This document shows, piece after piece, positions 37,071 to 42,266 of a DNA stretch of 64,000 nt. A program made the translations under genes and the position numbers. The stretch covers positions 3,703 through 67,702 of the forward strand of contig RHPI01002220.1 in the NCBI GenBank assembly GCA_009103225.1. The letters are read 5' to 3'. Under the pieces are notes generated by a model that was given only the letters and a program-made list of their open reading frames with translations, was not told where the DNA came from and ran no database searches. The stretch is from Chlorokybus atmophyticus. Taxonomy: Eukaryota > Plantae > Mesostigma and Chlorokybus algae. Position 1 is the stretch's first letter. Each line of letters opens with the position of its first letter.

Positions 37071-37614
37071 TGTGGTTAGTGCTGAGAGATGAACAAATGC
37101 ACACTGTGTGCCATTACAGCTTGCACAGGGTGTACGATGTATACTCTATGCAAGCTTCAGCTTGGGACCCTGTTTGCTCGCGCGTGCATGCATGAGCGCG
37201 CACACACCTCCCACTTTTCCAGCCCGCTGAAACAACCACCTACACCGCCCTTGCACTTTTCAACAACATGCGGTAGAGTACAGTCACCTGGCTACCATGA
37301 CGCGGCCAGTGACATGTTGTGTCACCTCACATGCTCTATTAACATGCGCATACAACACAATAGCAAAACTTAATCCTATTCCATACATGCAGATGCATGC
37401 AGGAAGCACTGCACCGCATTGAAGTCCACTTCTTGAAGTAAATATAGATGGATGGTCCGAGCACCCCATCAATAACCTCCATGTTACAACTGTTTCGACT
37501 CTAGCAACTGATTTAGCAATAGATCTAACCTTGATGCAGCACGACAAGCAACTAGCAGCTCTGCTGCAGTGCCAAGTGTTATGTTGAATGCTCCTATGTT
37601 GAGTACTCCTACCG

Positions 37615-38757
37615 TCAGCTTCCAGAGCTGCGCCTCTTCTTTGGTGATGGCGAGTTTTGAAAAGCAGCCGGGCAAAGGGCGTTGGCCAAACACTCTGAGC
37701 ATTTGGTGCTGCGGGGCGTGCATATTGTCTGGCCAAAGCCCACAAGCAGCGGGTTGATTTCCGCCCACAGCGACTGCGGAAGCCACGCTTGCAGTGCCAG
37801 CCGCGTGGCCTCGGGTGTGGTTGTACCATTGGGACCCACCCAATTCAACCTGTTGGCTATGCGATGCACATGGGTGTCCACACAGATGCCCTCCACCTTC
37901 CCCCATGCCACGGTCATGATGAGGTGGGCCATTTTTGGGCCAATGCCCGGCAGTGCCATGAGACCGGCCATGTCGGGAGGTATATCTCCATCATACTTGT
38001 CGCGCATGATCGCAGTGATGCCCTTCAAGTTGGCGGCTTTGCGGTTGTAAAACCCAACGGGATGAAGCAGCTTCTGCAACACGTCCACCTCGGTGTCAAG
38101 CACACTCGAAACTGTCAGTCCCGAGTGCGCCTGCAGCCTCAACACCGCAGCGTAAGTCACCTCGTCTTTGGTCTGACTGGACAACAACGCCGCAACCAAT
38201 ACGTGGAACCGTCTCACTTCCGGGGGATATTGCGTAAGCGAGACGGCTTCACAGCCCATTGTGTCAACAGGCGCGTTCTTCGCTGCTCGCATGGCTTGGA
38301 TGTGCGCAAGCTGTTGCTCCCACAACTCAGGTGGATTTATGGTCATGGAGGAGGCTGCTGCCTTTACCACCACCTTTGCACTGGGTTCATCTGGCACACC
38401 ACCAGCAGGTTCTTGTTGCTGTGCTTCTCCCTTACCAACACCGCGTGCATGCCTCTGCCGCTTTGGGGGAGTTTTTACTTCACACGCATGTGCGGGTACC
38501 ACATCTGCCTCATACTCCACCTTTACTGTTGCTCTGCGCGTGGCTTTACGGCTTGCGAGTTGAGTACTTACTTCCACCTGCTCGTGACCAACACCTTTTG
38601 TTGAAGAGGAGGCGAACGCAAACTCTTCAAACACGTTATTGACCTCAACAACCACAACGCGTGCTCGGGTCAGAGGCATGCCGGCTCGGCAAGGGAGGAG
38701 AGCAAAGCAGCGCACTCTCAGCGCTGCAGCTCTTGCGCAGTGTCGCAAAGCAAGCAT
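37615..38757 (-). CDS. NTH1: Endonuclease III homolog (DNA glycosylase/AP lyase), single exon, organelle-transit-like N-terminus
   Basis: APVDTMGCE, LLSSQTKDEVT, HhH motif LMALPGIGPKMA (catalytic Lys), ICVDTHVHRI (catalytic Asp), 4Fe-4S motif CTPRSTKCSECLANALC. Uninterrupted 380-aa ORF. Confidence 0.97.
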   Translation of the reverse strand: MLALRHCARAAALRVRCFALLPCRAGMPLTRARVVVVEVNNVFEEFAFASSSTKGVGHEQVEVSTQLASRKATRRATVKVEYEADVVPAHACEVKTPPKRQRHARGVGKGEAQQQEPAGGVPDEPSAKVVVKAAASSMTINPPELWEQQLAHIQAMRAAKNAPVDTMGCEAVSLTQYPPEVRRFHVLVAALLSSQTKDEVTYAAVLRLQAHSGLTVSSVLDTEVDVLQKLLHPVGFYNRKAANLKGITAIMRDKYDGDIPPDMAGLMALPGIGPKMAHLIMTVAWGKVEGICVDTHVHRIANRLNWVGPNGTTTPEATRLALQAWLPQSLWAEINPLLVGFGQTICTPRSTKCSECLANALCPAAFQNSPSPKKRRSSGS

Positions 38758-38767
38758 GTACTGTGAA

Positions 38768-40388
38768 CTATCTGCTGTTGCTGTCCCTGTCGTCCTTCAA
38801 CTGAGCGTCGCCCAATAGCTCTTGGGCCTTCAGTGCCACCATGCGCTCCTCGAAGGCTTCGGCCAGAAGCTCTGAGCCGCTGGCGGGCCGGCCTGTGAAT
38901 GACCATGACCATGATGACGTGTCTGCTCTAACATCAACAGATCAATGAAGCAAAGCACCGGGCCTTACCCTTTCTATCAGGTACCAAGCCAAGGCCGCGT
39001 GCTGACACTGGCAGCACCTGTATGTTGGACAGCTGTCGCACACTTGCCTGCAGGCATCATCACCATGCGAGTAAGGCCTTTTCCCCGATGAGACAAGTGC
39101 AAACAGTAAGCATCCCGCAGATGCTTTGAACTCAACATGCATAGCTTGCTGAGGAGCTCAGCAGGAGCTTGATAGGACACGCACCTGCGGGGTGTAAGAA
39201 TAGGTGGCTGCCACTGGCCTTGGAGGGGGTATAGTCACAGACGGTCGCAACTCTGCGCAGGACTGAAAGTCAGCAACATCAACAACCACGCATATGCGCG
39301 CTTGCACATCCACATAAGCAACACGCGCGCACACGCACATGCACAGGCACACGTACAGTGCCTGTAACAACTGGGTCATGCTTGTTACGCTCTGCAATGA
39401 AGGTATGCAGTCCTCACCTTGTTGAGATGCTGTAGCTGGTGCTGCTTGAGGGTTGTGCTCAGGTGCTGTATTGGCGGGGTCGATGCCAGCATGGCGAAGC
39501 GCAGCGCGCGTCAAGGGCCCGGGAGTTTGCACGACGCTCACGCCGCCTCGGATCTCATCGCGGATGGCATTCAGCTGCTGCAAACCCTGTTGGAGCTCCT
39601 GGTGCAGCTGAACGAGGAACAGATAACAAGCGCGCAAAGCAGATGTTAGCTCCTGAACCATGCAAAGCCAATGCAAGAACACTCTTTGCCAACACTGCTT
39701 GAACTCACTTTAATCTCATACACTCAATTGGTACAGCAATGCCATGCTGAGAACTACAACATCGCACGCACTTTCACAACCACAAATTGATGGCAGCAGA
39801 GTGCAGAGCGACATTTGTACCCTCACTGGTGATAGATGAACCAAAGCAGTCATAAATGTGCATGACACCTACCTCGTTGAGCTGGTTGCGCTCTGCAAAG
39901 GAGTCAAAGCTCTGGCGCACTCTGTAAATGTACCCAAGCGCCCGCCCGGAGACTTTCCCTGCCGCGCGCGCGATCACAGGCAGGTCCTTCTGCCCTGGCA
40001 AAGCACACATGATGTTCACAACAAGCATTGGCAGTTGCAACCATTTCGAAGACTGGCGCATTCATCAGCTGCAAGTCAGTGCTGTTGGACGCATTGCATC
40101 TACTATTTTCAAGGTCGACAACAATCAGGCAATGCCATGCCATGCCATGGATGTGCTTGAGCTGGCATTTTAGCATTTGACAGCACGACAAAGCAGCAGA
40201 CTTGGCATGCACAATACCTTGGGATGTATGCGCTAAACTTTGCATGCAGGCTTGCACAGCTGCCCTGCTCTCTAACAGCAGAGCTGCCCTGCTCCATGCT
40301 ATGCTGTGCCTGCTCTGTGCTCACCAAAGACGACGGCGCCAACGCCCAGCAGCAGGGCCACCTCGCCAAACGACAATCCAAACAGCAT
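38768..40388 (-). CDS. TATB: Plant-type mitochondrial TatB (twin-arginine translocase subunit), 6 exons
   Basis: MLFGLSFGEVALLLGVGAVVFG|QKDLPVIARAAGKVSGRALGY, LHQELQQGLQQLNAIRDEI..GPLTR, VLPVSARGLGLVPDRK, SGSELLAEAFEERMVALKAQELL; these match recalled motifs of Arabidopsis mtTatB (At5g43680). Stop TAG at 38770-38768. Confidence 0.85.
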
Positions 40389-41256
40389 GGACGACAACAG
40401 CAGGAGGCAGGAGTCGCGTGCACCTCGGACAACAGCTACCACCACACCACCGCCGCCGCCGCCACTGCCAGCACCAGCTTTTACCCTAAGCCGTGACGCA
40501 TTTCCCGCCAAATTTGCGGTGGCTGTGTTGTCGTCGGTGGCGGTGGCGACAGAGGCGAGGTGGAGGTGGAGGTGGAGGTGGAGGTGGGGTCCTTATCAAT
40601 CAGGTCGTCTTGCGTGTCAAGCCTTCGCACAATCGCTTAAAGCGTTGCAAAGCTGGGGTGTGTCAGATGGTCAAGTGCAGCATGTACAAAGTATGGGTTC
40701 AGTGGATAGTGCGCGTGAGTAGGTGTGGATATTAGTAAATAGGTATGATGTACTACTAGCCCACGAACCCATGCGTTTCCCTGCAGTACACTTCATTCTT
40801 CAATCGTTCAGTGGTTTGCAGTTGCACAAGCCAAGTCCTGGCATGTTCAACAGTTGCCATGCACAGTCGCATTGCTCCTTTCAAGCGAGATCAGAATCGA
40901 GCTTCTTGACTGCCAGCGCTGGCTACTTCTCGAACGTTGTCTTAGGTTGACAACATGCATTGGCGCACAAGGGAGTGCACAAGCGTGCACACATGCATGC
41001 ACTTTGCAAACAACGGTGCCATCAAGATTTTCCTTGTCGTGCACATAGTACATCCAGTTGCAGCTCACTCTGCTTTTGCGCATTGCTTGCTTGCGTTCAA
41101 TGCAACGAAGATAAGCTGGCGCTCTATCTGCAGCATACACTTGTGCTTTGTCAACACTGGGAGCTGGAGAGCAAGACGATTAGCAAGCCAGCACTAGAGC
41201 AGCTGAAGCAGCGAAGTTGGGTGTCGTTTGAGCGTGCGCATGGCAACAACACAGTC

Positions 41257-42266
41257 ATGACGCCAGCAGTAGCAGCATCAACAGCAGCAGTGAAGGAGAA
41301 GCTGACAGCCAAAGAGAAGAAGCAAAAGCGAAAGCAAGCGCTGTTAGCCGAGCAAGCTGAGCTGAATGCTGCCAAGGGCGCCATTGCCGCCGCATATGCA
41401 AAGGCAAACTTGCTGGCGGAGTTCGCTGCTTTCAGTGTATTTGAAAGAAGTGGCCTTGCATTGAAGCTGGAGCTTAAGCGATCCAGCGAGCTTAATGGTG
41501 AATCAAGGAGCTGGATCATGGGCGTACTCGAGACGAACATGGCTCCGCAGTATGCCAAAACCTGGCAGGAGGTGAAGAAGCTGAAAGCCAGAGAGATGGT
41601 TGAAGGTGATGCTCTGTACATTGTAGCCCGTGATGCAAAGACGGATGAGAGAACGGCATTCGCACAATTCCGATTCGTCATTGAAGAAGACATTGAGGTG
41701 CAGTGGCATATTTTACTGCTCAAAAGTGATGTATACAACATAAACCGACACAGCCTGGATTGCATGCACACAAACCCTACGCCAATATCGAGTGCATTGA
41801 CACTTCTGTGTTGTGTGTTACAACATACATGCGCATTTGGGCCTTTATACATCCATGTGACTACACATGGATGTAAAAATGCACAGCATTTGTTACCGCA
41901 TGCACACGCAGACACACGTGTGCACGCAAGCAGGTGCTGTACGTCTACGAGCTGCAGCTGATGGAGGACGTGCTGAGGAAGGGTCTTGGGCGTCATCTCA
42001 TGATGTTGATGGAGTTGCTTGCTAGGAAGAACGCCATGCGAGGCGTCATGCTGACTGTGCAGAAGCGTAACGCGGCAGCCTTGGCGATTTATGAGCGAAT
42101 GGGGTATACGATTGCCGACATATCCCCCAGCAAGTGCGACCCGCTGGCCCCCGAGGGGACATACAACTATGAGATATTGTGTAAGATACACGATGCGCAA
42201 GCGGGAGCGCTGCTAGTGTCCAGAGGAGAAGCTGCCAGGAGTGAGAACTTGTCTTTTGGTGTATGA
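41257..42266 (+). CDS. NAA40: N-alpha-acetyltransferase 40 (NatD, histone H4/H2A N-terminal acetyltransferase), 2 exons
   Basis: LETNMAPQY, AFAQFRFVIEEDIE|VLYVYELQL..RKGLGRHLM..VMLTVQKRNAAALAIY..MGYTIADISPS..YNYEILCK. Confidence 0.9.

Follow-up and report, generated by a model that had tools for sequence, protein, structure and literature searches.

Organization of the TatB-NTH1 locus

The stretch of Chlorokybus atmophyticus DNA analyzed here (64,000 nt; assembly GCA_009103225.1, contig RHPI01002220.1, positions 3,703 to 67,702), hereafter the window, carries on its minus strand a gene for a predicted mitochondrial-type TatB protein, the first open reading frame (ORF1), which is followed almost directly by an intronless second frame (ORF2) encoding a predicted DNA repair glycosylase, endonuclease III (NTH1). 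A first-pass annotation, made from the sequence of the window, had proposed that both proteins are expressed from one nuclear mRNA. This proposal was followed up with homology searches, ortholog alignments, and contigs assembled from the short reads of four sequencing runs (X1 to X4). These runs are labelled only as possible RNA; we take them to be cDNA because introns and intergenic DNA are left uncovered. The features of the locus, in window coordinates and in order of transcription, are as follows.

40389..40460, minus strand: minimum 5' untranslated region (UTR), free of AUG; the alignment of the X3 contig reaches 40460
40325..40388, minus strand: TatB exon 1, which holds the start codon (UCGUCC-AUG-C) and encodes the transmembrane helix, including a conserved Glu9; intron 1 is gone in the X3 and X4 contigs
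39873..39994, minus strand: TatB exon 2, amphipathic helix; the exon alone retrieves the annotated protein P0121 at 100%, and X1, X3, and X4 all show the 39607/39873 joint
39418..39607, minus strand: TatB exon 3, with conserved ELHxELQ...IRxEI and PGPLTR motifs (ortholog alignment, RNA contigs)
39185..39252, minus strand: TatB exon 4; joints in the X1 and X3 contigs
38969..39047, minus strand: TatB exon 5, with a conserved LPVSA..GL.P motif (RNA contigs, ortholog alignment)
38768..38892, minus strand: coding part of the last TatB exon, ending in TAG at 38770-38768; the C-terminus aligns with ortholog ends
38758..38767, minus strand: inter-ORF spacer TTCACAGTAC, 10 nt; no mismatches in the X1 contig, and no indel in the X3 contig over 38657-38891
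37615..38757, minus strand: intronless NTH1 ORF of 380 aa, ending in TGA at 37617-37615 (Pfam, TIGR01083, and 7RDS matches)
38677..38679, minus strand: codon for the second in-frame methionine of NTH1 (MPLTR); it has G at -3 and might serve as an alternative start
37417..37614, minus strand: 3'UTR common to the unit; contigs reach 37417 in X1 and 37376 in X2, and the sole sense UGUAA is at 37488-37484

The junction reads exactly as first described: on the minus strand the TatB frame ends in ...AGC AGA TAG, and this stop codon stands 10 nt before the NTH1 ATG and out of frame with it. In the spliced RNA the ORF2 ATG (38757) lies 658 nt past the ORF1 ATG, in frame +1, and a TGA located 39 nt 5' of the NTH1 ATG closes the ORF2 frame. 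The next in-frame methionine of NTH1, which the first-pass annotation had placed less than 100 nt downstream, is found 88 nt after the TatB stop. The ORFs differ in intron content, with five introns in the 648 nt of TatB versus none in the 1143 nt of NTH1; the latter had been called intronless from the sequence and is indeed unspliced in the RNA contigs. A TatB-NTH1 fusion produced by readthrough or frameshifting was considered and rejected, as the two frames differ, the ORF2 frame is closed upstream, and the C-terminus of TatB ends where those of its orthologues end.

Identity of the two encoded proteins

The TatB model comprises six coding exons separated by introns that are all of the GT..AG type, and its 215-aa product is identical to an annotated C. 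atmophyticus protein, Chrsp182S08759 (P0121; EukProt/JGI). This protein was retrieved with exon 2 alone as the query, among 1.84 billion representative proteins, and streptophyte TatB proteins were matched as well. The spliced 62-aa N-terminus matches the Pfam family PF02416, TatA_B_E (6.4e-6; 25.8 bits vs. a cut-off of 21), and its best NCBIfam model is TIGR01410 tatB, albeit below the cut-off of that model. No single TatB exon had a match in Pfam, and exon 2 by itself, compared with the sequences in PDB, gave chance matches only (E >= 0.5). A profile search with TatB recovered hundreds of land-plant proteins named TatB. ORF1 aligns end to end with the nuclear TatB proteins of Mesostigma, Mesotaenium, Chara, and land plants, with 25 invariant columns distributed from the N- to the C-terminus. 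Features common to this alignment are a helix that begins at residue 2-4 with no presequence before it, the helix glutamate (Glu9, present in ORF1), a long amphipathic helix, and a C-terminal LP(V/I)SA..GL.P motif.

Both the TatA/TatB signature and the nucleus-encoded mitochondrial type of TatB have been described (PMC6251230), and the mitochondrial DNA of Chlorokybus encodes the partner protein MttB (TatC) (PMC1894977). On the basis of full-length orthology, ORF1 is a nuclear-encoded mitochondrial-type TatB with a predicted mitochondrial location, and the earlier assignment is thereby upheld. The terminal exon also stands as proposed, with spliced contigs in agreement and a C-terminus that stops together with those of its orthologues. 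The nuclear-encoded mitochondrial TatB of plants, of the At5g43680 type (Carrie et al. 2016, as cited in PMC6251230), is alike over its full length, in its helix, in the glutamate, and in the C-terminal motif. Homologues of this type are also present in environmental sequence: the ENA metagenome scaffold L001 (2012 nt) and the TARA scaffold L003 (1226 nt) carry intron-bearing eukaryotic mitochondrial-type TatB homologues, presumably from uncultured algae or protists. A second ORF after the TatB-like gene on L001 was considered as a possible NTH neighbor and rejected, since it is a second TatB exon.

ORF2 matches the Pfam HhH-GPD family (3.5e-21) and the TIGR01083 nth model (9e-35), and residues 140-365 match the structure of human NTHL1 (7RDS; 2.8e-77), which places the catalytic core at ~140-365. 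The protein keeps the lysine of the helix-hairpin-helix (LPGIGPKMAHL), the aspartate of VDTHVHRI, and the cysteines of an Fe-S motif (C-x6-C-x2-C-x5-C). By homology and motif content, ORF2 is thus a predicted base-excision-repair glycosylase of the endonuclease III type with an Fe-S cluster motif. Eukaryotic endonucleases III, including human NTHL1 and plant NTH1/NTH2, are alike in the catalytic lysine, the aspartate, and the Fe-S cysteines; in contrast to these homologues, Chlorokybus NTH1 is intronless, carries 140 additional, lineage-specific residues at its N-terminus, and is apparently unannotated.

The first 26 residues of NTH1, from its first in-frame start (AUG1) to its second (AUG2), contain five basic and no acidic residues, and basic stretches (PKRQRH and PKKRR) are found further inside the protein. 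The first-pass annotation had called this N-terminus transit-like; its composition agrees, and composition is the basis on which the description stands. The two starts could give forms with and without the basic 26-aa presequence, which may correspond to organellar and nuclear isoforms. NTH1 was also considered as a Tat substrate in view of the twin-arginine-like TRRATVK near residue 72; this was rejected because the residues that follow are acidic and polar and no hydrophobic segment is present.

Comparison with the RNA contigs of diverged Chlorokybus lineages indicates that ORF2 is maintained. Among the X3 substitutions listed in NTH1, 16 of 18 affect position 3 of a codon (P=1.7e-6), and 15 of 18 leave the amino acid unchanged; in X4, position 3 accounts for 10 of 11. 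All indels within ORF2 preserve the frame (-3, -12, +3, and a +1/-1 pair 5 nt apart). Synonymous substitutions and in-frame or compensated indels point to purifying selection, and the position-3 bias together with frame-keeping indels therefore identifies ORF2 as a maintained coding sequence rather than an accident of a 3'UTR. The protein collection that contains the annotated TatB holds no annotated protein identical or near-identical to NTH1. Because TatB is annotated while NTH1 is unmatched, NTH1 was probably missed by the Chlorokybus annotation, as expected for an overlooked ORF2. Second cistrons may be systematically missed in the annotation of this genome.

RNA contigs spanning both reading frames

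The contigs that bear on the locus are as follows.

X1, one contig of 1931 nt, no mismatch to the window: TatB exons 2-6 joined at the model borders, then unbroken from 38891 to 37417 through the junction, all of NTH1, and ~200 nt of 3'UTR
X3, one contig of 2286 nt, ~5-10% diverged: layout as in X1 plus exon 1 and a short leader; aligned to 40460, with 22 further unaligned letters
X4, one contig of 2044 nt, ~5-10% diverged: layout as in X1 plus exon 1 and a short leader; aligned to 40401, with 42 further letters
X2, several short contigs, identical to the window: 37376-38686 only, at a depth of 3.4-7.1x that drops toward the 5' end

Spliced TatB, the junction, the whole of NTH1, and the 3'UTR are thus found on single contigs of 1.9-2.3 kb in three RNA assemblies from three lineages. 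Four TatB introns are removed from the X1 contig exactly at the model exon borders, and all five are confirmed by the spliced RNA contigs taken together. The X3 and X4 contigs carry nothing past their short UTRs. Within X4, the region corresponding to 38653-38783 is too diverged to be aligned to the window. For the first-pass claim of one mRNA for TatB and NTH1, the part that holds is that contigs run unbroken across both ORFs in three lineages; the part that is left short is the step to single molecules, which short-read contigs do not prove, and X2 covers NTH1 only.

Strain CCAC 0220, from which the sequenced genome was obtained, is now placed in C. melkonianii, and cryptic Chlorokybus species have been described whose crown is possibly up to 76 Ma old (PMC8611356). 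The study to which the RNA runs belong and the divergence of these runs would fit such cryptic species.

Two observations concern the neighborhood upstream. At 40557-40587 and 40436-40470, a perfect (GAGGTG)5 repeat of the plus strand and GGC/GGT runs occur in and just upstream of the TatB leader. These leader repeats fall in a region of ~860 nt common with a divergent plus-strand gene that starts near 41251, for which a Pfam search returned no match. X4, which is otherwise ~8-10% diverged, also contains a 4x contig identical to the window at 41226-41400 (plus strand), in this neighboring gene; this suggests either slight cross-sample carry-over within the study or a very conserved exon.

Proposed translation of the second reading frame

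We consider it most likely, with a probability of about 0.6, that the conserved TatB-NTH1 unit gives a bicistronic mRNA that is translated by leaky scanning. One promoter upstream of 40460 would drive a transcript of ~2.0-2.3 kb, from which the five introns would be removed to leave an RNA with ORF1 and, 10 nt further on, an ORF2 that lies wholly in the last exon. 43S complexes would often bypass the weak AUG of ORF1, would then scan 658 nt holding only four other AUGs, and would initiate at AUG1 (38757) or AUG2 (38679) of NTH1. This route is leaky scanning of the kind shown experimentally for chlorophyte bicistrons. We infer that both ORFs are carried on single molecules and that these would be the sole or main NTH1 mRNA; the mechanism of translation and the subcellular targeting of the two products are predicted in the same way.

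Several features of the transcript are consistent with this mechanism. Judged by the general eukaryotic rule, which may differ from the Chlorokybus consensus, the ORF1 start (UCGUCC-AUG-C) has a weak context, with U at -3 and C at +4. The leader of at least 72 nt contains no AUG. Of the four other AUGs between the ORF1 AUG and ORF2, one is in frame and three are out of frame; the ORFs that these three open, of 6, 10, and 30 codons, terminate well short of ORF2. The density of AUG is 6.1/kb before ORF2 and 18.4/kb within it; the TatB introns have 38/kb and the window as a whole 22.6/kb. The stretch before ORF2 is within the lowest 1.1% of equal-sized genomic windows for AUG count. Observed/expected ratios are 0.59 before ORF2 and 1.38 within it, where the published medians are ~0.49 and ~1.0, respectively (PMC11892635). 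The sense strand is free of AATAAA, ATTAAA, and TGTAA from the TatB ATG to 37488, past the NTH1 stop. The absence of these poly(A) motifs counts weakly against an early 3' end of TatB; the motifs may not be those of Chlorokybus.

A number of observations weigh against a bicistronic mRNA read by leaky scanning. When the synonymous codons of ORF1 were permuted, a mean of 2.6 AUGs was obtained vs. the four observed, so the low AUG count follows from the protein composition of TatB and not from additional avoidance. A purine occupies position -3 at two of the four internal AUGs, the context of NTH1 AUG1 (38757) is itself weak, and the 648 nt of ORF1 exceed the medians of curated sets (291-357 nt). 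The X2 contigs, at a depth of 3-7x, cover NTH1 alone, as would be expected from 3' bias at low depth or, alternatively, from a monocistronic NTH1 mRNA. Finally, short-read assembly merges overlapping transcripts, such that a contig across two genes does not amount to a single transcript, and the contigs are compatible with an extra NTH1 start site or with an early TatB poly(A) site.

Alternative transcript and translation models

The main rival, possible though doubtful, is a locus that is only partly polycistronic, wherein a readthrough RNA exists but most NTH1 is made from a separate mRNA that starts in the last TatB intron or exon, or just past the stop, and uses AUG2 at 38679. The X2 contigs end at 38686, only 7 nt upstream of AUG2, and AUG2, with its G at -3, is in a better context than AUG1. 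The unalignable segment of X4 (38653-38783) has diverged as a non-coding leader might, and many incompletely polycistronic loci are known from Gallaher et al. (PMC7896298). However, the depth of X2 falls from 7.1 to 3.5 from 3' to 5', and the loss of upstream sequence can be a product of 3' bias; no contig of X1, X3, or X4 begins near the junction. An internal promoter would further need to fit within a coding exon of 125 nt or an intron of 76 nt, and the 26 residues after AUG1 resemble a presequence in composition.

A bicistronic mRNA could also be translated by termination and reinitiation, with ribosomes that end TatB at the TAG and resume 10 nt further on at AUG1. We regard this as quite unlikely. 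The spacer is within the range of coupled stop-start systems, and the weak context of AUG1 would be less important for reinitiation than for scanning. On the other hand, the weak context of ORF1 and the scarcity of AUGs favor scanning, and the 215 codons of ORF1 are long for efficient reinitiation in eukaryotes, which after an ORF of this length is normally inefficient. Mutational tests in algae have likewise favored leaky scanning (PMC11892635, PMC7896298).

The least likely model is that of two ordinary, overlapping units joined by the assemblers, with a TatB poly(A) site inside NTH1, an NTH1 start inside TatB, and no functional bicistron: the general caveat on de Bruijn contigs applies, and across a 10-nt gap any TatB 3'UTR must overlap NTH1, but the merged layout recurs in three lineages, in contigs that are complete at both the 5' and the 3' end and show no alternative branches, no canonical sense-strand poly(A) motif occurs inside NTH1, and the model requires conservation of an internal promoter as well as an internal terminator.

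Comparison with known bicistronic loci

The exclusively polycistronic nuclear loci of chlorophytes (Gallaher et al. 2021, PMC7896298; Duenas et al. 2025, PMC11892635) resemble the TatB-NTH1 locus in that one strand carries two conserved and unrelated ORFs separated by a very short spacer, ORF1 is the shorter of the two, the 5'UTR is short and free of AUG, the Kozak-like context of ORF1 is weak, AUGs are depleted before ORF2, and an organelle-related protein is encoded. The curated algal bicistrons are characterized by a short ORF1, median spacers of 40-183 nt, short 5'UTRs, and a weak ORF1 context (Duenas et al. 2025, PMC11892635). The Chlorokybus locus differs in its host, a streptophyte alga (Chlorokybophyceae), and in its long ORF1 of 648 nt with five introns followed by an intronless ORF2; it is known here from sequence and short-read contigs. 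The precedent in green algae to which the first-pass annotation appealed is therefore real as regards the type of layout, while the cases described are chlorophyte and Chlorokybus is a streptophyte. Within the streptophytes, the CDC26-TTM3 pair of land plants and algae, as cited in PMC11892635, is likewise a nuclear mRNA for two unrelated proteins, with translation of the downstream ORF once the upstream start has been passed over. Its ORF1 is tiny and the pair deeply conserved, whereas TatB-NTH1 is confined to Chlorokybus among the genomes checked.

In the other streptophytes checked, the gene for mitochondrial TatB stands alone, whereas the last TatB exon of Chlorokybus also carries NTH1. 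Chara braunii, Closterium, and the orchid Apostasia all lack an NTH homologue within 10 kb of TatB, and land-plant TatB transcripts in Logan are 1.0-1.6 kb in length. Adjacency of the two genes in related algae, which had been raised as a point of conservation, thus extends to three diverged Chlorokybus lineages and is absent from Chara braunii and Closterium; it looks specific to the Chlorokybus lineage and common to its diverged members. The pair does not occur in the curated Chlamydomonas and Auxenochlorella datasets, a comparison outside of which the supplementary lists of 2021 fall, and a search of the literature on Chlorokybus and on streptophyte algae returned no relevant description of bicistronic or polycistronic nuclear genes. 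TatB-NTH1 is probably a new gene pair for the layout, known in green algae, in which two proteins are made from one mRNA.

The contrast between an intronless NTH1 and the five introns of TatB would fit retroposition of NTH1 into the TatB 3'UTR. It would also fit the idea that an ORF2 located within the last exon avoids junction-dependent decay. A more far-reaching scenario combines these elements: NTH1 would be made only as a hidden second cistron, derived from a retroposed intronless copy in the TatB 3'UTR and kept for tens of millions of years through last-exon escape from decay, with the two starts giving organellar and nuclear isoforms. We consider this full scenario unlikely.

Implications for gene organization in the green lineage

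Chlorokybus is an early-branching streptophyte alga, the lineage of which is sister to all other streptophytes except Mesostigma. Polycistronic nuclear mRNAs have been documented in chlorophyte algae (PMC7896298, PMC11892635), with a few cases from land plants, and the locus described here helps to show that this layout is older or wider in the green lineage than chlorophytes alone. A core DNA-repair gene seems to have escaped annotation that allows each transcript a single ORF, and genes recorded as 'absent' from such genomes may therefore be hidden second cistrons. The pairing of an intron-rich ORF1 with an intronless ORF2 in the last exon constitutes a natural test of the avoidance of nonsense-mediated decay. 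If NTH1 does exist only as a retroposed second cistron, the locus would provide a datable example of the birth of a eukaryotic bicistron.

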